Under the pieces are notes generated by a model. It did not search any database. It saw nothing but the letters and a program-made list of their open reading frames with translations, and was not told the DNA's origin. Below are positions 938-48,600 of a stretch of DNA of 64,000 nucleotides, piece after piece. How positions within the stretch are numbered: position 1 is the first letter of the stretch; every line of letters begins with the position of its first letter. This stretch comes from Chlorokybus atmophyticus (Eukaryota > Plantae > Mesostigma and Chlorokybus algae): the NCBI GenBank assembly GCA_009103225.1, contig RHPI01002503.1:873585-937584 (forward strand). The letters run 5' to 3'. The position numbers were made by a program, and so were the translations under genes.

Positions 938-3900
938 ATGGAGGAGTGGTGTGCTGTGTGCGCTGAGCCGCTGGAGTGGTGTGCCGTGGGGCGGTGCCAC
1001 CACAGGGAAGTCTGCGCAGTCTGCACTGCACGCCTGCGGCTCATCATGAACGACAGGAGCTGCTGCATATGCAAGCAGCCCTTGCCGGAGGTGTTTGTCA
1101 CCAAGGTGAGATATCAGCTGCTATGCTGTATTGCAGCTGCCTGCCTGTCCTTTCTGCAGTCTCATAGAGGTACACACGACGTGTTGCATGTTGCGTTCAT
1201 GTGTAGTGCCGGGGAGAGTATGACAGTGTGTTGGATGTCTGCAAGGGTTGCACTTGCTTATGCAATGCTTGCTACACTGCAGTTTCTTGGCGACTACACA
1301 GCTACGCCACCAAATTTTGACCAGCTCGCAACCAAAGTTAAGGGCAAGGGTGCTGGTGGAGAGTACTACTACGATGACACTCTGGCAGCTTATTTTGATG
1401 ATGAGGATCAGCTCAAGTACCTGGGGGATATGTATACCCTGACATGCGCCGTCTGCGATTCGGAGGTCCCCGCTGATAAGAAGCCATTCAAAGACACGGA
1501 AGCCCTCAAACGGCATCTCAGCTTGCACCAGGTAACCAGCACAACAGTTGTAGACACCCCCGTGTCGTGGGTTTGCGGCTGGTGCATAGATGCTACTGGC
1601 AAAATGAATAAAGGGTCAGCACATGGCATGCCTGTCTTACTCACACGCTTGTTCTGCAGCGATTCATGTGCGACTTGTGCTTGGAGAGCAGGAAGGTATT
1701 TGTGCGTGAGCAACGATTGTACAGCAAGGCACAGCTTGAGCAGCACCAGCGTGGGGGTTCAGCAGAGGTACCAAGTGCTTGTCTCGATGTGGGGGCACTT
1801 GCAGAGGCATTTGACCAGTTTTGTGCAGGTTGACGGTGGTGCTGAGGAAAGCGGAGGCTTTAAGGGTCATCCGATGTGTGGCTTCTGCAAGCAACGGTTT
1901 TATGACAGCGCAGGTATGCATGTGATGGTGCGGTGAACGCGTGCAGCCTGTCATACTATTTGGTGTCTGAGGCGATACTTTGCAGCTCTGTACCAGCACA
2001 TGACAACCGGCCACTTCTCATGCCACATCTGCCAACGCCAGCGCCCCGATGTGTTTGAGTACTACCGCGATTACCCTCAGCTGGAGGACCACTTCAAGCG
2101 TAGTCACTTCCTTTGTGAGCATCCTTCATGCTTAGAGAAGAAGTTTGTAGTATTTGCGGCAGAGCCTGATTACAAGAGGCATGTCGCGATGGAACACGGT
2201 GATGGGCTTTCTCAGGCGCAGCGGCGTGCTGCTCTGCAGATACCTGTCAATTTCAGATATCGTCGGCCAGGAGAAAATGAAGAATTTGACCATGACAGAG
2301 GTGCAACATCCATGCCACCAAGCAAGCATACAAATCTGTCCTTCACACTTGGCATGACTGAGACCTCTTGTGTGTGAAGGTGGACGTCGGGATAGAGGCC
2401 GAGGTCGGGGCCGGGGTGGTGCAGCTCCGAGAGTCCCCAGGCCGCATAGTGTGTCCCCACCTCCCCGACAGTTATCTGACACTGAAGTCACAGTGAGTGC
2501 GTTGGATGATGCGGCTGCTTTTCCACTTCCATCCGGGGCCTTTGCGTCCAGCCACGGTGCGCTGGAGTCCTCTGGGCGCTGGGTACAGGTAATGACACGC
2601 GAGCCGGGGAAGAGGGGGGGGGGGGGGGGGGGNNNNNNNNNNNNNNNNNNNNNNNNNNNNNNNNNNNNNNNNNNNNNNNNNNNNNNNNNNNNNNNNNNNN
2701 NNNNNNNNNNNNNNNNNNNNNNNNNNNNNNNNNNNNNNNNNNNNNNNNNNNNNNNNNNNNNNNNNNNNNNNNNNNNNNNNNNNNNNNNNNNNNNNNNNNN
2801 NNNNNNNNNNNNNNNNNNNNNNNNNNNNNNNNNNNNNNNNNNNNNNNNNNNNNNNNNNNNNNNNNNNNNNNNNNNNNNNNNNNNNNNNNNNNNNNNNNNN
2901 NNNNNNNNNNNNNNNNNNNNNNNNNNNNNNNNNNNNNNNNNNNNNNNNNNNNNNNNNNNNNNNNNNNNNNNNNNNNNNNNNNNNNNNNNNNNNNNNNNNN
3001 NNNNNNNNNNNNNNNNNNNNNNNNNNNNNNNNNNNNNNNNNNNNNNNNNNNNNNNNNNNNNNNNNNNNNNNNNNNNNNNNNNNNNNNNNNNNNNNNNNNN
3101 NNNNNNNNNNNNNNNNNNNNNNNNNNNNNNNNNNNNNNNNNNNNNNNNNNNNNNNNNNNNNNNNNNNNNNNNNNNNNNNNNNNNNNNNNNNNNNNNNNNN
3201 NNNNNNNNNNNNNNNNNNNNNNNNNNNNNNNNNNNNNNNNNNNNNNNNNNNNNNNNNNNNNNNNNNNNNNNNNNNNNNNNNNNNNNNNNNNNNNNNNNNN
3301 NNNNNNNNNNNNNNNNNNNNNNNNNNNNNNNNNNNNNNNNNNNNNNNNNNNNNNNNNNNNNNNNNNNNNNNNNNNNNNNNNNNNNNNNNNNNNNNNNNNN
3401 NNNNNNNNNNNNNNNNNNNNNNNNNNNNNNNNNNNNNNNNNNNNNNNNNNNNNNNNNNNNNNNNNNNNNNNNNNNNNNNNNNNNNNNNNNGTGTTATTAT
3501 CATATCTAAGAGGAATGTTGAAACGTCTGCAATGTGTCATTCTGCAGGCTGCTGGGTCCCCAGGCGGTGTCCTGCAAGGCGAAGCTTTCCCCCCACTTCC
3601 TGGCACGTCACGCAGTGCACGTAGAAGAGCAAGAGGGCGCGGGTTTGCGCAAATCGTTGGTGGCCAGGCATCTTTTGGCACACCTCGCGTACTTCATGCA
3701 GGTCAGTGTTGCTGTGTAGTGACACGTTTAGATGATGTGAATGTGTTTAAGCAGTATGCTTACACAAATACGTGCATGCACTGCAGCTGGACGTCACTCG
3801 GCCCCAGCAGCTCCTGCGAGTGCATATGGTGCAGATGAAACAATTGGAGAGCCAGCATCCATTGTGATGACAAGGCCTGTGGACCGAGTATCACGTCCCT

Positions 3901-4796
3901 CGAGCTCAACCGGTATACACTGACTTCGCTTGCTTCCATACTGAAAAGTAGACACTGTGGGGCAGTTGTCCAGGCCTGTCACGATATGTTCATTGCAGTA
4001 GGAATTACAAATTCAACCACTGATGTTGGGTCAACACAATGCAGGGAATGCGGGAGCTGCTGAAGCGTGTCCAAGCGCCGAGGACATGGAGAGGTTGAAA
4101 GCGGCGAACCGGGAGGTTGTGGAGAAAGTCCGGCAAGCATTGGGAGGGGACGAGGAGAAGTTCCGGTCTTTTCGTGAGCGCTCAGCGCAGTTCCGACAGG
4201 GTCGACTCTCTGTCGCTGAGTACTTCACTTACGTGCAGCAGCTCGGCCTGGCGGAACATTTGCCGGCACTGATATCACTACTACCGACTTCGGACCCAAA
4301 GAAACAGGAGCTGCAGCTGTTGTTGAATCAGTCTGTCCAGGCCAGCCGGCACGCAGCAGCAAACCCTTTGCCTTCAGCAAGCAGCCATAGCACAGCAGTC
4401 CGAATGACTCACTCCAGCAGTGCTCCGGACTTGCAAAGCAGAAGCAGTGCTGCAGTCTCATCTTGGATTTGCTCCCAGTGCACGTATCAGAACTCTGACA
4501 GCAGCTCAGCGTGTGCAATGTGTCACGCGCCAAGGCAGAGCGGCCAAGCAGCATCTTCAACCTCCTACGCCAAGAAGACTAAAAAGCAGAGCATTAGGTT
4601 GACAGGCGGGTTGGGCTCGGTTCATGACTTGCTAGAACAGTTGCCTGGCGGGTCGGGCCAAGGGCCGGGGCCGAGCGCGGCTGGTGGCGGGCGAGGCGTC
4701 CCGCCTGCAAGGGGCGCGTGGGCCAACGGGGGCGGGGCGCGCTTGGCGCACAAAACTAGTGTCGTTAACACTGCTTGGAGTAGGACAGATGGTTGA
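938..4796 (+). CDS. HEL2/ZNF598: ZNF598/HEL2-like RING E3 ligase (ribosome quality control), multi-exon, interrupted by N gap 2633-3490; 5'UTR intron about 524-923
   Basis: N-terminal RING (CAVCAEPLEWCAVGRCHHREVCAVCTARLR...CCICK), C2H2-like fingers (GHPMCGFCKQRFYD, HFSCHIC, HFLCEHPSC), conserved helical region (ANREVVEKVRQALGGDEEKF...), C-terminal W-x-C-x2-C-x3-N-x6-C-x2-C finger. GT-AG junctions keep the frame (e.g. 1105/1283). Stop TGA ends at 4796. Confidence 0.9.
2633..3490. other. Assembly gap (N), preceded by a poly-G run
   Basis: 858 N preceded by about 19 G; lies inside the HEL2 gene, so exons may be missing. Confidence 1.
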
Positions 4797-17588: not shown

Positions 17589-19386
17589 ATGGAGGCGGTG
17601 TGCGTGCCGACGCTGGCGGCGGCGGCGGATGAGGCGGACGACAAGCAGCTGCAGGGATTATCGGTTAGCAACGGCGGCGTGCTGGTTGTGGGCTTAAGAG
17701 AGGCGAAGGATGGTGTTCCTAATGGCCAGGCGGCGAGTGGTAAGAAGAGTGCTGCCGCCGCCGCCGCCGCCGCTGGTGTCAGTGGCCTGGACGCCCTCAC
17801 CTACGCCTTCGTCGTGGCCTGGTCCGCTCTGTGTTGTCTGCTCGTGCGGGCCAGGCCGGAGATGTGGCAGGTCGGAGCCTCCGCCGCATTCTTCGCCGCT
17901 ATATCAAAGGTACGTACGCATGCGCCTGATGAGTGTCTTATGTGTGGCGTCGAAGGTATGCATGAGCTCGCAATGTGTATGTGTGAGAAGTTGTGCACGT
18001 TCATATTCATTGTGTGTGCGGGAGTGATTGTGACGGGGAATGCTGTGTGTTGTGGTGGCACATGCTAAGCACCACTGCTTGTGCACACCAGATAGCATTG
18101 GTCATGCGAACACACAGTTGCTGAGTTTCTGTCTCTTGCTGTGGATATCTGTTTTCGCTTGCTTATGAAAGCATCCAACTTGTCGAGTCTATGCAGTGTA
18201 GAATGAAGTGAGCATCACAGTTTGTACGCATCATCGCGTTGATACGCTCTGCGTGGGTTGAGAGAATTTTTTTCTTCTCTGCATAGGCACAACAAGGAGC
18301 TTACAGACCAGATGTAAATGACACACACCCGCGCACGTATACTCAATATCACATTCACACACAACCAACACAATGTCTTGTGCAGGGTTCCGGCCTGGTT
18401 GGCGAGCGCCTACCCTGGCTCAAGCAGCTTGAGGACAGGAAGCAGCGCTTGTGGCACAACACATTCGTGTCTTACATCCACTCCATCCTCATCACCATCG
18501 GCTGTAAGTGCATCCCATTGTCCATTCGGTGTTGGGTGCTGGTAACTGGCATGAGATGTGCTCTGTCAAGGTTTGTGTGCAGACACGCGTGCACGTTGGC
18601 AGGTATATATGTATTGACGGTGGATTTCCATCGGTTGAACGACATGGTTTGGGGCCACAGCGCACGCGCTTACAGGTACAAGAGTGCATGCACGTCCACA
18701 ACACCCACCTGTTATACACCATCAACATAGTCATGGGTGACATAGTGTGTTACTGGTTCACCCTCCATCCTGTCACGACGATACACTGGTCCTGTCACAA
18801 CCACATCAGACTTGCCCATATCTGCCATTTGTTCAATGCTATACTCACTCTACTACTCACTCACTCAATGCCAACCCTCCTCTCCCTCAGTGTCGTGAGC
18901 GTCTCAGCCGGTTACTTCGCCTACGACACTTTCGACATGGTTTCCAAGCGTCTCTACAACCCTCGCAACCCCGGGATCCTCGCCCACCACGCCGTACTCC
19001 TTGTCTGCTTCACCACCGCTTTATACCGCGACTTCGCCCTATTCTACCTCCTGTTGACACTCGCATGTGAAGCCCACTCTGTATTCCTACACCAGAGGCG
19101 ACTGCTCCAACTATCTGGTTATAAGAATGCGAGAGTTAACAACCTCAATTGGAAGCTCAATTGGGTCACTTTTTGGGGGTTTAGGGCCGGGGTGCATGCG
19201 GTGCTGCCGGTGGTGTTGCTGAAGCAGAGGGAGTTGTTCCCGCATTGGGGGCTGTTTGGAATGGCGTTTGGGGGTATGATTGTGTTTAACTACATGAACT
19301 GGGAGCTGTGGAGGGACCTCAGGCGAGCGCGACGGAGGGAAATGAAGGGTGAGGGAAAGGGGAGGGAGGGAGAGCATGAGGATTGA
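17589..19386 (+). CDS. TLC (TRAM/LAG1/CLN8) domain membrane protein
   Basis: NTFVSYIHSI, SAGYFAYDTFD, ILAHH, LACEAHSVFLHQRRLL, LNWVTFWGFR, FNYMNWELWR are TLC hallmarks. The start codon is uncertain because the frame is open upstream to 17121. Confidence 0.85.
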
Positions 19387-27239: not shown

Positions 27240-28951
27240 ATGACGGATCAGGCTGTCCTGCTGCTGAGAAAGCAGCTCAAAGGTATGCTCTGTCAACTGG
27301 GAAGGGTTTGTATTCTTGTGCGATGTGTGCGCAGTGCTGCAGCTTTGTTGCGGCTTTTCAAAGCTGTAGTTGAAAGGTAGTCAAAGAAGCTTGTACAGTT
27401 TTAGCTCAACCTAATTAAGGGCCCTTGCTGCAATTCGGCGCAGCAGATCAGCATGGTGCAAGCATGTTTTGCTGTGTGCCTTGTATAGAGGAAGCGGTAG
27501 GGCAAGGGCCTGCATGCCAGCAACGAGTGTGATCAAGTGTGATACAGCTCTCTTTTCTGTCAAGCGCCAGTCTGAACGCCGCTGCGCACCCTTGTGTTGC
27601 ATAGGCTACAGTTTCCCAAGTTGAGACTTTGAACCAAAGCAGATATAGCTGTGTCCGAAGTTGTGGAATTACGTCCTCTGCATGCGTGTGCCCTGAGCAT
27701 GCAATGTGAGCACGTAGTGTTCGTAGCTGCTGTAGATTATCACGTGCATGGTCGCTGCACCAACTAGCATGGTCCAGTGTGCTACCTATGCGTAGCAGCA
27801 TAGCCGGCTGTGATTAGCGTTGGTCTCAGGGCTGATATTACCTGTTGCATCAATGTTACTCGCGTATACACCCACTGGACTCTTGCACGCTTACCTGCTT
27901 ACTAGTTTGCGCATTCCTTATCGGATCAGTGTCGTTATCGCTATCATCGGACACACTGTTGCATAGTGCAACAGCTTGTGCTAGTTGTACCGGCCCATAG
28001 TGGGTCGTATGTTTCTGATTGTAGAGTTTGCCTGATTCTGCAGAGTTGACACGAAATCCTGTGGATGGCTTCTCTGCGGGTCTCGTTGACGACTCCAACG
28101 TGTTTGAATGGGCGGTCACAATCATGGGGCCACCGGACACACTTTATGAAGGAGGCTTCTTCAACGCTGTGATGAACTTCCCTCCAGACTACCCGCAGAA
28201 GCCGCCTACCGTGCGATTCACCTCAGAAATGTGGCACCCAAACGGTATGTTGCTTACAGAGAAAGTGGCAACCACCAGTCGTCAATGTCATTGTGGCTTA
28301 GGGGTCAACTTGTTTTGTCATGTAGTGTACCCGGATGGAAGGGTGTGCATCTCCATCTTGCATTCTCCTGGGGAAGACCCGCATGGATACGAGCTGGCCA
28401 GCGAGCGCTGGTCACCAGTCCACACGGTATGTCAACTGGCATGCAGTGTTGATGGAATGCTCTGCTGGTTTTGATTGGCAGATGGATAGTGGTTTGTTGT
28501 TGGTTGTCTGCATTTGCTTGCGTCAGGTGTTGCTTCTTCTGCCACAACTCAGTGTGTTGGTGACATGATGCCTGCTGACACAAGTCTTCTGCATGGCAGG
28601 TTGAGTCCATCATCCTGAGCATTATATCAATGCTGTCGAGCCCCAACGACGAGTCGCCCGCAAACATTGATGCTGCAGTGAGTAACATATCGTTTATATC
28701 TATCATATGACCATATTGTGGAGTCATGTTGCAGACCTTGTTTATGCGGCATGGTTGGCCGTTATTCCTGCACGTTTGTGTGTGGTGCATGCTTTGCATG
28801 TTGGACAATAGCACAACACCCACGTGACTTGCGTGTTTCGTTGGTGTACTGACATGTAGCTCATATGCAGAAGGAATGGCGAGAGCATCAAGCAGACTTC
28901 AAGAAAAAAGTCAGTCGCATAGTAAGGAAGTCACAGGAAAACTTCATGTGA
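27240..28951 (+). CDS. UBC7: E2 ubiquitin-conjugating enzyme, UBC7/UBE2G1 class, 5 exons
   Basis: LLLRKQLK/ELTRNPVDGFSAGLVDDSNVFEW...HPN/VYPDGRVCISILH (catalytic Cys) plus the acidic-loop insertion SPGEDPHGYELASERW. Confidence 0.96.
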
Positions 28952-29141
28952 TGTGCGCGCAACAGTTTGACCCTGCAAGAAAACAGCCCGTGTATCAAAA
29001 GACATTGCAAAACTTACTCGCAAACATGTGGAAGCACGTGGTCTGATGGAGAGCACAGCACAGAATACTGTTGTATTTGTCATTATTAAGCTGTGCGGAT
29101 TCCAGCAGCGCAGTCAGCACAAGGTCCCCCCCCTCCCCCCC

Positions 29142-29482
29142 NNNNNNNNNNNNNNNNNNNNNNNNNNNNNNNNNNNNNNNNNNNNNNNNNNNNNNNNNNN
29201 NNNNNNNNNNNNNNNNNNNNNNNNNNNNNNNNNNNNNNNNNNNNNNNNNNNNNNNNNNNNNNNNNNNNNNNNNNNNNNNNNNNNNNNNNNNNNNNNNNNN
29301 NNNNNNNNNNNNNNNNNNNNNNNNNNNNNNNNNNNNNNNNNNNNNNNNNNNNNNNNNNNNNNNNNNNNNNNNNNNNNNNNNNNNNNNNNNNNNNNNNNNN
29401 NNNNNNNNNNNNNNNNNNNNNNNNNNNNNNNNNNNNNNNNNNNNNNNNNNNNNNNNNNNNNNNNNNNNNNNNNNNNNNNNNN
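29142..29482. other. Assembly gap (N), preceded by a C-rich run
   Basis: Direct reading. Confidence 1.
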
Positions 29483-30663
29483 CTCTCCTGCAAGCTTTAT
29501 GCTCTTGCACCTGTGATACGCACCATGTGTGCCCCCCCCCCCTTTTCCATGAAGGCAAGGCTTGCACCACATGTACTGGTGAGTCCAAACCACTACTACT
29601 TTCGCTGCTTACACAATGTTAGGATTAGTTTATGCTTTGGTCAATACTCGTCCATGGGAGGCTGAGTTGTTGTCGTGCAGGCTAAATGTACAGGATATGC
29701 GCAGGGCTGTATGTATCTTATTCTAATACTTTGGTGTGATGCTCCCTTGCATGCAAGACGTGTACAGAAGATGCGTCAGAGAATGTGCATATGTCAATCT
29801 AGCATATGCTGATTCCATTGTACTGGGTATCATGTGTACGTGCACGAGTTATCAGAAGCAAGGTTTGCACCTCCCAGCACCATGTTCACAATCCAGCAGT
29901 AACCAACATTGATTCAAGAGGAGTGGTGTTAGCTGCATTAGCTAGCGCCATCACAGGATGATGGCTGGCGTGCATGCTTCCTTACACCTCGCAGCGTCAA
30001 TGCCAATCGCTAGAATGGTCGAAGCCTTGGCGAGCGCAGGGCACTTATATAGTTTGGCTGTGCTCAAAAGTAGATGAGCGCAATTGGCATTGATAGCAAG
30101 GTTTCACAGAACGACATAAATCTTGGTTACGGTGTACTTTCAAATACGACACTCACGCAAGTGTTCGACTTTTCACAGCTGCTATTATGCATCGCACACG
30201 ACCGCGTTCCAAACACACTTCACCACACTACACGCGACACGAGCATGGTTGTGCTACTTGCATCCCCCCTGTACAAGCGGTGAACTAAAACCTTTGCGGC
30301 GTACGTCCAGTACCTAGTTGACATCTTGTAGCCTTCTTGGCTAAGCTGAATTGGCTTGGCCCCCCCTTCAATGATCTTTTAGTGTTTGGGCCAAGTGTTT
30401 GGGCCAAACACCCCACTTAAGAAGCCCTTCCTTGGTTGCCCTTGCAGACTACCTCGCGCATAACATGTACATATGCACACGCACGTATGCAAGCCTCGGC
30501 AACACACCCACACAACCTCTGCTAGTGCCGCCAACCCTCCCCGAGCATTGCACAACACAGCATTCTCGCGCCCAACCGGTGATTGCAACGTGGAACTGTA
30601 CATGCATGTACAACGGGGAGGGCTAGTAGAGTAGGGTAGTGCAGAAGCCTGATGGTAACTACT

Positions 30664-34781: not shown

Positions 34782-37327
34782 ACGCTGTCTGCCTCTATGT
34801 ATCTGCCACAGGCAGCAGTAAGCTGTTGATGGCATATTGTGTTGTCCTGTGTTGGACAGTTCAAATGACCCTGGGTTGATGTTCTGCGATGGGACAAGTG
34901 CTTTGTTGGACATGTGGGCCTTGGAAATGCACCTTAAACCTATGTTAATGGTTCAAAGGTAAACCATGAGAGTCCTTATGTAGAGCACATGTCATGCCAG
35001 GTCAGCACACAGTGACAAGGCCTTATTGGTCTTGGACACTTGTAGTGTCAGGTCGGGGAGGGCAGCAAGTGAGTATATAAGCTTATGTAAGCTTTAAGTG
35101 GGAATCATGGTATGCACTATTGGAGAGTCACTTGTGTGTGGGGTGCCTGACTAAGAGCTGTTCAAGAGGCCCTCCCCCTTACCTCCCTTCTAGGGTGGTT
35201 GTGTGAGTACTTGGCAAAGGAAGTTGTTCCAGATGGGCGTCCTCTTCCTCCTTGGCGTGGAGCTGCTAGGCTGCTCCTGTGGTGTCTTGCCGATGTACCA
35301 AGTGGTACTTAGCACACAAGTTGTGTTGCTGGACTTCCTCCTAGCTAAAGTTGTGTTGTGCTTGTGCATAAGTGTGCGGTGTCTACAAGTAAGTTAGTGT
35401 GGAAACATCACAAAATGCGTGATGAAAATGGAAACGTGCTCACGTATGTACGCATATATAATCATACACACAACATTGTATTGAAACACGCGCAAAAGTG
35501 CAACTAATCATACATTCAACATGTCACTTGGTTCATAATTACCATTACTGCAGGTATACAATGTACAGGATAAGCACGAGGCTGTCAGAAGCATGCACTT
35601 CACCATAAACGAGTAATAATATGCTGTATTTATAGTAGCAATCATGATGTCGCACTAGCAGCCCTCGGCACGCCCTTCCCCCTCGCACAGCTCCTCAAGC
35701 AGCAGTTTGCCTCATCGACATCCGGATCCACCGATCCGCTCGAGGCAGCCGCTATCACCAAGTACTCCGGACTACCCTTCAAAGCGCGCCGCGTGCCAAC
35801 CCTGGCCCCATCCAATCCGCCGCCGCCATCTATAGCGGCGGGCCGCGTCGACTGCCAGCGGCGACCTCCGCCAATCAGGAGCCAGGGTCTATGGCAGTGC
35901 CGACAACTACAAAGGGACTCCCCGCAGGACGCGTCGGCGGGAAGTTGCAAGTGAATGGACTGGAGCCGAAGCGGCGGTGACACTGCCGGAAACTGAACAG
36001 CTGACCACGTAGAAGTAGTGCGACTAGGTTGTGTTGCTTAGCACCGGTTGTGGGTTGTGTGTTACTAGTGGGCACCCTGCCTTAGCAGACCACTGCCCAG
36101 ACTTGACTTTGCTAAAGCTCTTCAAAGGTGTGAGTGTTTGTTATTGTGGTTGTGGTCACCGCGTCTGCTGCCTGCATACCGCATCTCCTCATTGCTGCCA
36201 CATTGCTCGCGCACAGCGGTCAGCCAATGTTGTCGCAACTGTGCCTGCTCGTACATGTGTGCCTGGAGCTTGCAGCGTGTAAACTCATTTCACTTAGCTG
36301 AAACATACCACGAGTGCATAGTGTGACTGCTGTGTGCCTTTCTCAAGCCATCCCCTATCTGGAGCTTGTTGAGTGAGTAACAACTGCCTGCTGGCTATCC
36401 CATACTGCGCTGCTACCCGTAGTCTTCACCTCTACTTTGCTTGCTTGCCACTCCTTCCCCCCACCCTTGTGTATTACTGCGGAACGCTTCCAGTGTGCCC
36501 TTTTGCTCGTTTTCTGGTGTTGCCGCACTGCGAGACGCACTCGGCCGTCGAGCCTGCCTTGCACGACAATGATTAAGCTACTGTCACATAAGTATTATGT
36601 ACATAATGCCGGCGATCAAGCGACAACATATCATGTACGGTGCTTGAAATAGGAAAAAAAGACAGTGTAATGAGTACAACACAAGCCGTGCGTCGTATCT
36701 TACATACGCAATCATATCTTTTGCATTTGAATCGCTTATGCATCAATGATATTTGAACAACACAATGCATCATGCTTTGCAAATACACCTCATTGCGTAC
36801 TTTGTGCACATAGTAGAAGATAGGGTTGCCCCGGTGGTCATATATGCAGCACTGAGGTGCGTTTGGCTGGCTGTATGTGATGCATGATGCATTGAATAGC
36901 ATGCAAGTATCTGCCTCGCACTTCATCATGTACTACAATAACATGAGTGCAAGCCATGGGGCACGCTTTACTGTGTGCAGATGGACGCATCACAACAGTC
37001 GCAACACCTCTTCACCCACAATCGGGCCTGCTCTCCTTCATGTTGTTGAGTAGCACAGATGGCTGATCAGCCTTTGCATCATCCATCCCAAAGATGGCTT
37101 GGGATTGGGCAAGGAGAGCATGCTATTCTTCAAAAGAGATTTCGAGCATTATACAATGGGCCTATGTGAGAAGCTAGTTCTAGTTATAGCTACTTCATGC
37201 TAATACTGCACTAGCAGGCATACCTTCGCACACATGCACAGAAAGCGCCACAACACCCCTAGCGCAATCAACACGTCTATACACAAAACTGCTTTGATGC
37301 TGCTTACATCACCACCCGTGCACTATG

Positions 37328-39144
37328 CTATGATGCCAGCGTCATCCACCGGTCCAGCCGACTGTGGATGGCAAGCAAAGACTGCGATTCCGCCACAGCA
37401 TACGCGTACGTCGGGGGCTCCTCTTCGGACTCCAGCTGCACCGTTGCAGTGCTGTAATCAGGAGGCTCGTATATGTCTAAAGCTGGCCAGGTATCAGGGC
37501 GAACTTCAAAGCAGCCGGGCCGTGTACATAGGGTGACTGGGATATCAATGTGCAGCTTCTTGAACAGGCCGCGTGTCAACTTCACGCGCACAAAGTATTC
37601 AATGGCAATGATGTTGCAGTTTGATAGGGACGGGTGCAGTGTGCTCGGGATGGGAAGGTCGACTTGAGCCATCAGCTCAGAGCCTCCAGCAAGGTTGCCG
37701 GTCAACTCGGAAATGTTCACACATGAAGCGCGAAACTTCATAGAGTAGTTGGAAGTTTGCACCTGGCACTTTATCACCCTATGCAGCCTCACGGTTGCTT
37801 CTTTAATGGGGATAGCCTGTCCAGGGGACACCTAAGGGCAAGCCGCACATTAACCCACACAGACTGACAAAGTTGCTATAAATCAATATGGTACCATAAT
37901 ACAAGGGAGTTCAGTTAGCACGAACCCATTGCCTGTAGCGTACCTTAACAGTAACGTCAACAGGAATTGTATCGCCCACTGGCCATCCGCGCTTGGCGAT
38001 GTGCGCCGTGAGCTCAACTCGGCCTTCTCCGTTTTTGGATCCATAGTAAGACATGACTGCGCTCGACTCAACACGGGGTTGGGGTAAACACAATGCTGGG
38101 CTGGTCGGGTCCACTAGCGGCTTGACTGTGAAAATCTCGCGCTTTTGCAACTTGGGCAGGTTTAGACCCTGATCAAGGATTGCCTTTGCGTAGTATCGTA
38201 TGTGTCCCGCAGCTGCAGTGTTACAACTATCAAGCCCATCAAACGAGGGAGGGATGAGAGAAGGCGGAGGCACGAGAAAGCTGAAAGGGAATGTGTGTGC
38301 GCCTTCCTCTAGTAAATGTGCAGCATCCTGAGGCACGAAAAACAGACCATCAGTTGTGCAACTCCACAGATAAGTAGACACTGGTGTCCACTAGTGATAT
38401 CGGGCAGTAGACACTTAGTCATCAAAATACATGACTACCACTTGTAGCTTCATTTAACCGGCTGATAGAACTCTAGTAAGTCAGTGGCCACGACTAGCAA
38501 CAATTGAACGAGCAAAAGCCAAACCCTCCACAAAAGCTGCATGCAACTGCGTGCTACCTGTGGCCGTATTGGTGTAACAACGCAGTTATGTACAAGCCCT
38601 ATTTTGCACTGGTGCTACCCTACTAGTCAAGTGAGAGCTCAGTCAAACAGCATAGCACAACAGCAATTGTTACCGAGACAGCATAATCCCAACAAGTGAC
38701 AACATCGCTAAAGGACACGTGCCCATGCCCTATCTACTATGACAGGGGCTGTACCTAATCGTTCAAATTGAACGTGCTGGTGACAGACGTTTGCAGTGTT
38801 TATATTGCACCTAACACATCGGTAAACGATGCATAAAAGCAGCACCACCAAGCAATGTGGTAAACCCCTGGTGGGGTTCAGCATACCTCATTGCCGGGAG
38901 GGTGCAAGAGAACGGCGGTGTCTCGGTAGAGCTTGGAGACGCTCATGATAACATAGTCTCGGGTGCCATACCATCGCACCACGGCGCGGCCCTGGACACG
39001 CAGGCGCAGGGAGCGTGCCACGCAGGGCGCCTTGTTGGCCGGGACCACAACCCTAACCTGCCCCGCAAGCGTGCCCCCCGGGTACACCGACGAGTCGCTC
39101 CCCGCCCACTCTATCGTCACCTCCACCCCGCTAGGATCCCGCAT
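37328..39144 (-). CDS. Alpha-arrestin (Arrestin_N + Arrestin_C) with two C-terminal PPxY motifs, 3 exons
   Basis: VYPGGTLAGQVRV...LRLRVQGRAVVRW; GAHTFPFSFLVP...PSFDG...GHIRYYAKAILD; GWPVGDTIPVDVTV; IEYFVRVKL...LHIDIPVTL; tail motifs PPDY and PPTY. Start assumed at MRDPSG. Confidence 0.88.
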
Positions 39145-39433
39145 GGCGCCAGCAACCCGCAGCGCCCAGCCGCCGACGACGGCGCCAGTGCTGCCCCCAC
39201 GGCCGACTCCGACACGGACGATCCACACACACCTGCCCTACCTCACACCTACTACGCCCCCCCAAACCCACCAGCCGCCACGCCACAGCCACGCCCCAAC
39301 CCTAAGCCACTCCTGGAATCCACCCGTCCACAGCACCGCGCCCTCGTCCTTCTACTCCTCCTCGTCCTCCTCCGCCGCCGCCGCCGCCGCCACCAGTGAC
39401 GCCACAGTTGTGCATGCACAGCCTGAAGCGGCG

Positions 39434-41331: not shown

Positions 41332-43113
41332 CTACCTAACAGGTTTGGCAACATCTTTCCAGGTTACACTCGCATCCAGATTCCAAACATCCGGCTGAGC
41401 TCCATCAAATGGTAGCTCCAAGCCCTGCTCATACAGGCCTGGTGCAGACACCTGTGCGATGCATTACAATCAGAAATGCCACCCAACATGCATTTGATGC
41501 AAGTGATGCGCACAGTCTCACAAGCCCAACGTGGCCAAAGCTCTCAACAACAAGACAGCTGGCTATGCGCACAACTCCAGCGTGACACATACAATACCTC
41601 ATACCTCACAAGCATCGCAGAAAAATGCTCCGTCCTGTTGCACGTCCTCTGCGCTCAAGCCAATGCAAGCTGGGTGGAACCTTGACACCACAACAAGCAG
41701 TCAGCCTGCCTGCCATGCAAACAGCACCACATAAAAGAAAGCACATGAAGAGATATTGACTTGCTCTATAGTACCACTCAAAACACGTGTCGCACTGCAC
41801 CATCAACATGTCCGGATTGTACGGCAACTCGCACTTGCAGTACCTGAGAAGCATAGCCATGAATGAGAAACAACACGAGAAGCGCCAAGCCAGTGTTACC
41901 ACTGGCACAAGTTTGCATGTCACTGAGGCTTACACAGTGACAGCTTCCGGCTTCACTTGGCCGGTGGAGGCAGTGTACTCGAATCGGCAGTAGAAGTGCT
42001 CGTCGCGGATGACCCCCAAGTCAAGATACTGCTTGAGAGTGAGCACAGTGACTTTTCTGATGATGCTCTCAGCGGGGACCCAATCGCGGTGGTCCGATAG
42101 GAACAGCTCCCGCTCCCCATGGTGGCCTTGCCTGCCCAGCTTCGACTCCTCCGGGCGGTAGTACCACCGGGTCTTCAGCCACTTCCGCCCCGCCGCGTCC
42201 TGCTCAATCTGCTCAAGCTTGCCCACATATGGCAATCGTGCCCCCTCTGAAGGCGTCAAGGCCACAACGTCCCCAACTGCGCATACAACAATGTGTCAAG
42301 ATCATCAGCAAAGTCTGGTGGAAGATGAATGCCAGTATTTCTTGGTCTGCGTGGTGTGTTCATGCTGGTAGTGCATGACAGTGCTAAGCAACCATCAGCA
42401 AGAAACCATTGCCCTTGACAGTGATGTACGCGCACAGGCAAACCAATGGCAGTTTAAGCGATAGCTGTGACATGGGCACATGCAGGAGTACAACTTGAGG
42501 GCCATCGTGGGCCTGCTTACTAAGAAGCTGACACATTGAAAGACAACAACACGTTTGTCATAGAATACAATTAGCTGATAACCACTAACACAAAGGTATG
42601 CGCAGATCTGTGCATACCTTTGAGTGCGCGTCAACATGTAGTGTGGAAATGTGCGAAGCACACCACATGCAGATGCACACAAACACACGCATCGACTAAC
42701 GCATGCCAGTTTTTGCGGTTGCGCACTGCAACAATGCTGTATGCATGCAGCGTCAAGCTTGGGTTTGCCAAGAAGCTGGCACAAAAGAACAGATACTTTG
42801 GCCACTGAAGGGGGCCTAAAACTGTATAAACTTCACCTCTAACTGCACAACCATTGACCGTGCAATGGTCAATCTTCACGCGCTTGCTAAGGGCTACTTC
42901 ACCTCCTGCTCCCCTGCTTTTGCCGCCGCTGGGTGAAGGGAAGCAGGCGGCCGGGTTGACTACAGCAGCTGCGCCGGCAGGCCTAGCAGGTGCATGATGT
43001 TGATGGCTTTGCCTATATGGCTGAGCTGCTGAGCGGCTTTTCTTGCTGGCCAGGCCAGCCCCCGCGGTCACATCACCGCCGCCGCCCCCTACTCTACCTC
43101 TGGAAGGCGGCAT
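41332..43113 (-). CDS. EBS/SHL: BAH-PHD chromatin reader (EBS/SHL family), 5 exons
   Basis: VGDVVALTP...PYVGKLE...RWYYRPEES...ELFLSDH...FYCRFEY (BAH), then YCKCELPYNPDMLMVQCDTCFEWFHPACIG...FFCDAC (PHD). Confidence 0.93.
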
Positions 43114-45692: not shown

Positions 45693-48600
45693 CTACGACT
45701 CGTTTGCAATCTCCTCCCATATGCCCTCGCCCTCGCCCTCGCCGTCGCCGTCGCCCTCGGGCCTCTTGACCCCACCCGCGCCTGCGCGTCCTCCCTTCCC
45801 GTGCTGCTCTCTTTTCACCCCGACCGCGTTGTAAACGCTCTCGACCATGTGGTGGTCTAGGTACGGCCCGACGGGGATGCCTCTCGCCTCCATCTTCTCT
45901 ATCAGATCGAACGCCTCGCGCAGGGCCCCCTTGGAGTGGTGGTACTCCACCATCAGGGCGAACACGTCCCCAACACGCAGCGCGGCCAACTCCTCGTCCT
46001 CATCTGACCCACCCGCAGACAACAACCTCTCCACCAACTCCTCGCACACCTGAAGGGTTCTTCCAGGATCTGTTGTGACCATCTTGCGGCCCTGCACAAA
46101 CGTGTCCACCAGGGCGATGCGCTCGGCCAGGCTGCGCAGAGCTCGCTCGCGCTCGGCTGGGGTTGGCGTGGACGTAGATGAGGCTGAGGATGTGGATGTA
46201 GATGTGGGTGTTGACAATGCCTTGGACAAACACTTGTGCGCTTCGCGCAGAGCTATGAGGGCCTTGTCGTAGTCTCGGTAGTCATCGATCTCAATCTGTC
46301 CAACACGTGATTATGAATCACACGCACGCACATAGACGTACACACATGCACAGTCAAGTATGTGCGCGCGCATGATTGCTCACAAATGCACACACGCGTA
46401 CACTTGTGTGTATGCGTGCACACACAAGTGTACATGTGTACATCGACTTGAAGACTGCAATGCAGACCAGGTAGTTGTGTCCTCACCTGTGCGCACGCTT
46501 CATAGAACGACGACAGCGACCCGAACGCCCTGGCCTTGGTATAGAACTGTATGATGACTTTCATGACCTCTCCATCGTTGTGCCAGTCGAGGCTTTGCAG
46601 GTAGTTGGCAGCCATGACGTAGATCTCTCGCTGCCTCGACACGTTGGCGAAGAACACGATCTTCTCCGTGTCACCGGATTTGAGCAGAACCTCCATCGCT
46701 TTGAGCTTCTCGCCGGCCTGAGCGTACTTCTTGCAAGCAAGGTGGTACGCCCCTTGCCTCTTTAGACACTTGGCCAGTTTTAACAGCAATTGGTGCCTCT
46801 CTGCGGCCGCGTAAGCCGGGTACGCATCCTGAAGGGGAAAATTGTTGTTGGGTTGTGTATGTTTGTAGGCATAGAGTACAATTGTATACATCTTACCTGT
46901 GAGGGAGTTGTGTCTGGTGTGTGGCCACGGGGGAGGCCATTCGCTGAACCCGGTCGAGAGGGGTCCGCTGATCCGGCTGAGCTCGCCGAACCCGCTGAGC
47001 TGGGTTTGGCCGGGGCCGGGGGTGTCATCGCCTCGGCCATCTCCTCTGTAATTGCCACGTCCCTCTCTATACACTGCACACAGCAGCAGTTCAAACCCAA
47101 CGTGTAAGGTGTGTTTGTGTGTGCGCGCGTGCGCATGTGTGTGTGCGCGTGTGTGGCTATGCTGGTTAGCAGTGTACGCGCCGTACCAGGTCGAGTGCGC
47201 GGAAGTACTGCTTTGCGTGGATGAACATCTGGACAGCTTGCGCATACTGCCCGTGTTCCATGAAGAATGCCGCGCATCGCATCAGCAGCTCCGGATCGCT
47301 CCTGTTTCCGAGCTGGTCCGCTATCAGACGCAGGGATTCGAAGAGCCGCACCGAGAAGCACAGGTCCAACGCCCGCGACAACGAGCCGCCCTTGTGGAAC
47401 AGAGTCACAGCGCGCTCGTACTGGCTGCGTTCCTCGAAGTACTTGGCGCACTCGACCATCACGCGAGGCGTGCTCTGTAGGGACGTAACAATGTGTGCAT
47501 GCGCATCGTGCGTGCGTGCGTGTGTGCGTGCGTGCGTACGTGCGTGCATGCGTGCGTGAGAGCGCGCGTGCATACATCTGTCTCTCTCCTTGTGTGTGCA
47601 TGTGTGTGTGTGTGTGCGCGAGTGTGAGAGACACGTTGCCAGCGTTACCTGTAGGGCAAGGGTGACAAGCTCCGCGTCCATGCCATTGCGTTTGGCGAGC
47701 CTCACGGCATGGGAGTGCCGCCCGGCCCTCGCATACAGCTTCACTGCCTCAGCCACCCTCTCCATGTTCTCATACTGGCGTGCGAGGTGGAAGGCCGCCG
47801 CGGGGCTGCCTGATGACTCCACGACCTTAGCGGCCTCCTCTAAAGACCCCATAAAGCAATGAAGCCGCACTTGCGCGAGGTGATCACCCGCCTGTGCAGC
47901 AAAGGGACACACACACACACACACTGAGCCATGACTCTGGCAACCATTGCCTTCCACAGTTGATTTGACCAGCGGGTATCATCATTGGCACTTACTTGTT
48001 GGTACGATGCCAGAGCGGTGTGGTAGTCTCCGATGCTCTCCGAGTATCTTGCCCACCACTTCGCAAGCTCCGGGTCCCCCGACTTGGCGCAGTACTCCCT
48101 CAGATCATCCAGTCTTCCCGCGTCGCACAGCATGCGCGGCACCTCGTAGTGGCGGCCGGCGGGACCCGCGCGTTGGTACGCGTCCGCGGCGGCGCGCAGG
48201 TCACCCGTGGACTCGAGGTGCTTCGCGTACGCGTACCACGTGGTGCGCAAGTGGATGCGGTCCTTCTTCTCGGCGAGATCAGTCGCACGCTCCCACTCGC
48301 CATTAGCCTTCAACACACAACCGATATGTAAGTTGCTCAAGGTCAGGTGCTTGGTTTCCAATCACCTGACCGTGAGCATAGTTGCACTCAACAACGGACA
48401 CCTTGTACGTGCGTGCATGCGTGCGCGCGCGTGCGCGTGTGCGTGTGACTGCAGCCACAAGGGCTTTCTTATGGTGTGGCGTTGCACGGCACACCTGAAA
48501 GAGTTGGTTGAGTAGGTCCCACCGTTGCCCCTGCGCATACAGTCTCTCCGCCTCTTCGACCATATCGAGTTGTACAGCAACTTTCCCGACGCGAGCCTCT

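Follow-up and report, generated by a model that had tools for sequence, protein, structure and literature searches.

Alpha-arrestins are widespread among eukaryotes, and an arrestin core followed by a PPxY-bearing tail is regarded as the mark of the group (PMC2515105). These tails have been tied to the WW domains of Rsp5/Nedd4 ubiquitin ligases (PMC2515105, PMC2699828). The closest described systems are the animal alpha-arrestins (TXNIP, ARRDC1-5, and Caenorhabditis elegans ARRD-6), the fungal ARTs (e.g., Ldb19/Art1, Rod1, Rog3, and Bul1), which serve as adaptors for Rsp5, and the AdcA-F proteins of Dictyostelium and Entamoeba. The plant lineage, according to the working view, lost its arrestins and has arrestin-fold proteins of the VPS26 type only (PMC2515105; PMC11580166 for Arabidopsis); in Arabidopsis, VPS26 has even been proposed as a stand-in for the missing arrestins (PMC11580166). 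This work describes a gene at positions 39144-37328, on the minus strand, of a 64,000-nucleotide stretch of the genome of the streptophyte alga Chlorokybus atmophyticus (GenBank assembly GCA_009103225.1, contig RHPI01002503.1; the whole stretch is referred to here as the window). It is a functional nuclear Chlorokybus gene for a 381-amino-acid alpha-arrestin of the ARRDC/TXNIP/ART kind. It adds a lineage to a known family and is at odds with the common view of the plant lineage as arrestin-less.

Like the animal alpha-arrestins, the Chlorokybus protein consists of an Arrestin_N plus Arrestin_C core without extra domains and carries two PPxY motifs in its tail, a class trait (PMC2515105) that is also present in P0007, a protein from Chironomus. 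The animal proteins are, in addition, its closest solved structures, both by sequence and by structure. It is unlike them in its low identity to the solved members (∼18-26%), in a very short tail of 62 amino acids whose motifs lie merely 16 residues apart, and in its host, a streptophyte alga, Nedd4-family ligases being unreported from green plants and algae in surveys that left Chlorokybus unsampled. With the fungal ARTs it shares the arrestin core and PY motifs (PMC2515105, PMC2699828), weak matches to the LDB19 and Bul1_C Pfam families, and the presence of fungal clusters among its nearest Atlas models; the ARTs, however, greatly exceed it in length and contain large disordered insertions, and the matches to their Pfam families fall below the cutoff. 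AdcA-F resemble it in having an alpha-type core in a non-opisthokont host, beyond the groups from which Nedd4-like ligases are reported (PMC2699828, PMC3673628), but they carry additional FYVE, C2, SAM, MIT, or LIM domains (PMC2699828), whereas the Chlorokybus protein is a core with a PY tail. Finally, the arrestin-fold proteins that are known from land plants, VPS26A/B and VPS26C (DSCR3), belong to the same clan and have the same two-lobe beta-sandwich fold, yet they give no match at the sequence level, have no PY tail, and act in retromer or retriever.

Gene model, transcripts, and selection

The gene has three coding exons and two introns, all on the minus strand:

39144-38887, minus strand: exon 1, coding part; 86 codons, amino acids 1-86, ATG at 39144; translation equal to residues 1-86 of database protein P0001
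38886-38328, minus strand: intron 1; 559 nucleotides, GT..AG; skipped by transcript contigs of runs X1, X2, and X3
38327-37944, minus strand: exon 2; 128 codons, amino acids 87-214; translation equal to P0001 residues 87-214
37943-37832, minus strand: intron 2; 112 nucleotides, GT..AG; skipped by transcript contigs of runs X1, X2, and X3
37831-37328, minus strand: exon 3, coding part; 167 codons plus TAG, amino acids 215-381; translation equal to P0001 residues 215-381

All three exon translations are exactly equal to the matching slices of P0001 (381 amino acids), which is the public gene model jgi/Chlat1/6345/Chrsp44S05907 (EukProt EP00898). Its source label, Chlorokybus atmophyticus, a streptophyte alga, agrees with the green-lineage host proposed in the initial annotation of this locus; the sequenced strain was later assigned to C. 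melkonianii (PMC8611356). GC content is 0.53 to 0.66 in the exons versus 0.45 to 0.46 in the introns. While the protein is already in the public genome annotation with precomputed Pfam domains, no paper on alpha-arrestins of Chlorokybus or green algae was found in the literature searched, and arrestin, HECT, and ubiquitin all go unmentioned in the paper on the Chlorokybus genome.

The arrestin gene is expressed as correctly spliced mRNA. Assembled contigs were retrieved from runs X1 and X2, which belong to two different studies, and both are 100% identical to the window. The X1 contig (1,410 nucleotides) covers 37146-39226, and the X2 contig (1,444 nucleotides) covers 37118-37829, 37942-38326, and 38886-39229. 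Both contigs skip exactly the two predicted introns and can therefore have come from spliced RNA only. Together, they extend the gene beyond its coding sequence on both sides:

37118-39229, minus strand: transcribed span, minimum extent, from the assembled transcript contigs
39145-39229, minus strand: 5' untranslated leader; 85 nucleotides; frame-breaking indels of X3 at 39197-39222
37118-37327, minus strand: 3' untranslated region; covered by the transcript contigs; indels of X3 at 37244-37303

Because the 85-nucleotide leader contains no ATG, position 39144 is the first start codon of the transcript. Just upstream of the transcript 5' end, a simple repeat of the GCC/GGC type occupies 39339-39401.

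A further run, X3, bears the same organism label and contains an arrestin copy that is ∼5-7% diverged from the window and spliced at identical joints. Among the 33 coding-exon differences listed for this copy (a sample, with 37 further rows outside it), 30 are synonymous and 3 are replacements (V32I, N185S, and V324A). The indels among the listed differences all lie in the two untranslated regions, with none in the coding sequence. These differences show strong purifying selection on the arrestin between Chlorokybus lineages. Splits inside Chlorokybus have been dated up to ∼76 million years ago (PMC8611356), and we infer that X3 represents one of the described diverged Chlorokybus species. In the X3 data, a minor contig (38067-38968) matches the window without differences; its depth is 5.5, as opposed to 246 for the X3 allele proper, and it looks to have been carried over from another sample of the same study.

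Family assignment by sequence and structure

On the basis of Pfam, PDB sequence, and structural matches, the Chlorokybus protein is almost certainly an alpha-arrestin. Two Pfam domains cover most of its length:

38109-39114, minus strand, spanning intron 1: Arrestin_N (PF00339), amino acids 11-159; 54.2 bits (cutoff, 24.9), profile positions 3-146 of 148
37517-38027, minus strand, spanning intron 2: Arrestin_C (PF02752), amino acids 187-319; 62.3 bits (cutoff, 27.7), profile positions 2-136 of 137

Both profiles are matched near full length, in keeping with the complete Arrestin_N and Arrestin_C folds that the initial annotation had read from the translated frames. When the whole protein was compared by phmmer to all PDB sequences, TXNIP was retrieved with an E value of 9e-13 in a single alignment that runs through both lobes (amino acids 20-321), followed by the N lobe of ARRDC3 (E value, 4.8e-7). 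These two proteins were the sole PDB matches below an E value of 0.5, and no beta-arrestin chain and no VPS26 chain appeared at E values up to 10. Likewise, the Vps26 profile (PF03643) gave no match at E values up to 10, whether the whole protein or either half was searched. A grouping with VPS26 or DSCR3, which had been raised as the alternative to an arrestin, thus finds no counterpart in Pfam or in PDB sequences up to that threshold.

With Pfam relaxed to an E value of 10, the only additional rows in the lobes were LDB19 (12.8 bits) and Bul1_C (11.7 bits), both of which are fungal alpha-arrestin families and both of which scored below their cutoffs. A BLASTP comparison placed P0001 at 32% identity over 243 amino acids with P0004, an ARRDC-type protein. 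In the Atlas feature search, 63 of the 100 nearest clusters carry an Arrestin_N/Arrestin_C set, with VPS26 and VPS26C also among the neighbors. Searches with single exons were mostly blank: exon 1 gave no Pfam or PDB match, exon 3 found no solved relative, and exon 2 by itself reached beta-arrestin in the PDB only at E values of 0.4 or worse. The arrestin signal therefore needs the whole protein.

For structural comparison, an AlphaFold2 model was built from a shallow alignment of eight rows; its confidence is low (predicted local distance difference test [pLDDT], 58.5; predicted template modeling score [pTM], 0.40). The model consists of two beta-sandwich lobes and, after them, a tail that is disordered apart from a terminal helix (amino acids 361-379). 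The top five Foldseek matches are TXNIP and C. elegans ARRD-6, after which come VPS26C, VPS26, and beta-arrestins. The top five matches by VIA-align are TXNIP N domains and ARRDC3 N lobes, with Z scores of 12.0 to 13.5: for the N lobe, superposition gives a Z score of 13.5 and a root-mean-square deviation of 2.5 Å over 135 of 142 residues with the TXNIP N domain and Z scores of 12.0 to 12.2 with the ARRDC3 N lobe. Whole-chain TM-scores of 0.3 to 0.4 reflect a poorly placed lobe pair, and we relied on the per-lobe matches instead. In the same VIA-align comparison, Bacillus subtilis Spo0M matches the N lobe with a Z score of 11.0. Rows 4 and 5 of the Atlas shape search are large Armatimonadota and Planctomycetota clusters, labeled Arrestin_N/Arrestin_C/Spo0M, among the nearest models.

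Alpha-arrestins have an N domain without helix I (PMC2515105). DSSP assignment of the Chlorokybus model, at its low confidence (pLDDT, 58.5), shows no helix of four or more residues before amino acid 361. A visual or beta-arrestin was considered and rejected: the whole protein retrieved no beta-arrestin chain at E values up to 10, the model shows no helix I, and the tail has no clathrin-box string of the form L-phi-x-phi-[DE].

The PPxY tail and its candidate partner

The segment that follows Arrestin_C is short and contains the two motifs as well as a predicted helix:

37331-37516, minus strand: C-terminal tail, amino acids 320-381; 62 amino acids; pLDDT of ∼31-37 over amino acids 320-370, disordered to about amino acid 360
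37465-37454, minus strand: PPDY, amino acids 337-340; no difference among those listed for X3
37417-37406, minus strand: PPTY, amino acids 353-356; two changes in X3 (37412 and 37409), both synonymous
37337-37393, minus strand: predicted C-terminal helix, amino acids 361-379; from DSSP of the model, at low confidence

PPDY and PPTY, 16 residues apart, are the sole [PL]PxY strings in the whole protein and lie exactly where the initial annotation had placed them. The chance of finding two or more PPxY strings in the last 62 amino acids, estimated from 200,000 shuffles, is 1.5e-4 with whole-protein composition and 2.4e-4 with tail composition. The modeled disorder of the tail fits the expectation for linear motifs. 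By analogy to the systems described above, the PPxY motifs probably function as WW ligands. The predicted helix opens with ESQSLL (amino acids 361-366; 37376-37393, minus strand), a string that fits the acidic-dileucine pattern [DE]xxxL[LI]; read from the letters alone, this likeness could easily be due to chance.

The function that we propose is modeled on that of the ARTs in yeast and the ARRDCs in animals. The two lobes would bind membrane proteins at their cytosolic parts, and the PPxY pair would bring in a protein with WW domains, most probably a ubiquitin ligase; ubiquitination of the cargo would then lead to its sorting to endocytosis or degradation. By the same analogy, we consider it fairly likely that this chain operates up to and including the recruitment of a WW-domain partner by the PPxY motifs. 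That the partner is a Nedd4-type C2-WW-HECT ligase is, on the other hand, a tentative suggestion that we lean against. A retained Nedd4 module, the form in which the function was originally put, may be inferred only by extension from the animal and fungal cases.

Several points weigh against the proposed function. The C2-WW-HECT group has been found only in Opisthokonta and Apusozoa (Grau-Bove et al., PMC3673628), and green algae and plants have six HECT subfamilies, none of which is of the Nedd4 type (Marin, PMC3712016); Chlorokybus was unsampled in both surveys. Given the range in PMC3673628, a canonical Nedd4 partner is less to be expected from the outset. The expectation that the PPxY motifs would be kept in relatives holds for the second Chlorokybus lineage, X3; no orthologue was found outside the genus. 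Conservation of the motifs thus spans a short distance only, over which nearly the whole protein is unchanged, and the X3 counts behind that statement are themselves a sample. The low confidence of the structure model belongs on the same side. The background on which the initial annotation drew, for its part, agrees with the literature: plants are described as being without arrestin (PMC2515105; PMC11580166 for Arabidopsis), and a Nedd4-type family is missing from the surveys of HECT ligases in plants (PMC3712016, PMC3673628).

These points leave room for a true alpha-arrestin whose function needs no WW-HECT ligase, its core acting as a trafficking or signaling scaffold. The PPxY motifs would then bind a WW protein that is no ligase or a different kind of proline-recognition module, or would have been kept merely through conservation of the whole protein. 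We hold this account to be possible but on the unlikely side. It accords with the reported restriction of Nedd4-type ligases to Opisthokonta and Apusozoa (PMC3673628) and with their absence from the plant and green-algal HECT surveys (PMC3712016), as well as with the amoebozoan arrestin-domain proteins, which bear other interaction domains instead (PMC2699828). Moreover, nearly all residues are unchanged between the Chlorokybus lineages, so that two kept motifs are weak evidence by themselves. Against this stands the improbability of two canonical PPxY motifs arising by chance in a 62-amino-acid disordered tail (p ∼2e-4), together with the arrangement of a core and a PPxY tail just after Arrestin_C, which is the alpha-arrestin architecture of PMC2515105.

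Recruitment of a WW-domain partner, our preferred account of the tail, could also be part of something larger, namely, a working PY-WW ubiquitin-sorting network in Chlorokybus that comprises the alpha-arrestin, PPxY-tailed membrane proteins, and a WW-bearing ligase. Arrestin-adaptor removal of transporters would then have been present in the green-plant ancestor and lost toward land plants. We judge such a network to be rather unlikely. If it were true, either the ligase would be Nedd4-like, with an origin of that family far below Opisthokonta and Apusozoa, or there would be a different solution, such as a WW protein paired with a separate, membrane-anchored HECT.

Relatives, origin, and implications

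No relatives were found in other green organisms by exhaustive phmmer of exon 3 or by word-index, profile, and metagenome searches; at database scale, an arrestin of 25% identity falls below threshold, and the result means that no close orthologue is on record rather than that relatives are absent. When 1.84 billion representative proteins were searched by phmmer with exon 3, only P0001, P0003, and P0002 were retrieved. P0003 is a 204-amino-acid Arrestin_C fragment. P0002, a protein of 4,084 amino acids, matches exon 3 over amino acids 58-143, in seven separate stretches (E value, 7e-8); it has no arrestin Pfam domain and a TX13 repeat that looks subthreshold, and its match, which was set aside, is probably spurious and driven by composition or repeats. 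The word-index search with the whole protein found P0001 itself only. Two profile searches reached only ARRDC proteins of the chironomid type, because the profile had been seeded with P0003 and was biased toward animals.

The relatives that can be detected are animal-type (e.g., P0007 from Chironomus, whose tail likewise bears two PPxY motifs, and P0010 from Polypedilum), and identity to the animal proteins is 21 to 32%. The Atlas feature and shape searches returned arrestin clusters from fungi, animals, and bacteria and one labeled as diatom, with none labeled as green. Viral contigs contained no arrestin relative, and the JGI metagenomes gave 108 pattern matches, none of which was confirmed; the alignment used had a diversity too high for pattern scanning, and both scans detect close relatives only.

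Retention from a green ancestor is favored over ancient transfer because the introns are of the host type, the gene is present in diverged Chlorokybus lineages, identity to animal proteins is only 21 to 32%, and alpha-arrestins are spread widely among eukaryotes. Horizontal transfer into Chlorokybus from an opisthokont or another arrestin-bearing eukaryote, which concerns the origin of the gene and not its function, appears very unlikely to us. What speaks for a transfer is that no relative was detected in other green organisms and that such relatives as can be detected, few in number, are ARRDC proteins of the animal type. The latter result, however, comes in part from later searches that were biased toward animals through seeding with the first animal-type match, and the low identity means that any transfer would have to be ancient. 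The two spliceosomal GT..AG introns, the ordinary nuclear neighbors, the presence of an identically spliced copy in the diverged Chlorokybus lineage, and the lack of a relative in viral contigs further argue against a transfer.

Neighbors with Pfam domains in the window include the following:

41930-42265, minus strand: BAH-domain exon; 67.6 bits; nearest upstream neighbor of the arrestin gene
45693-47245, minus strand: IFT140 exons; TPR_IF140_C, 59.9 bits, and TPR_IF140-IFT172, 137.8 bits; probably extend further upstream
18508-19386, plus strand: open reading frame with a TLC (TRAM/LAG1/CLN8) domain; 46.1 bits
824-1936, plus strand: open reading frame with a ZNF598-type RING finger; 27.1 bits, just at the cutoff

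It is extremely improbable that the gene is a retromer or retriever subunit of the VPS26/DSCR3 kind mislabeled as an arrestin, a contaminant, or an annotation artifact: although VPS26 and VPS26C occur among the structural matches and Atlas neighbors, as expected for members of one clan, alpha-arrestins come first in every search and neither Pfam nor PDB sequences give a Vps26 match at E values up to 10; contamination is excluded by the ordinary nuclear genes that the contig carries and by the transcript evidence, and a pseudogene or artifact is rejected in view of the spliced contigs of two studies, which confirm the gene model.

Elsewhere in the window, two stretches are low in GC content (2001-4000, at 0.31, and 28001-30000, at 0.41, versus ∼0.52 elsewhere), and long open reading frames overlap on both strands at 2370-3681 and 28995-29665. 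The low-GC stretches may be repeat or mobile-element DNA.

As to what the gene means, the scope is that of a single gene in one genus, with a ligase module that is putative. Chlorokybus is one of the deepest streptophyte branches, and its arrestin is expressed and constrained, with the PY tail intact. With vertical inheritance of the gene, arrestins would have been lost inside the green lineage, after the Chlorokybophyceae had split off. The finding raises the question of which factor recognizes PPxY in an alga that lies beyond the Nedd4 range known so far and, more broadly, whether early green algae used arrestin-type adaptors for the ubiquitination and removal of plasma-membrane proteins.

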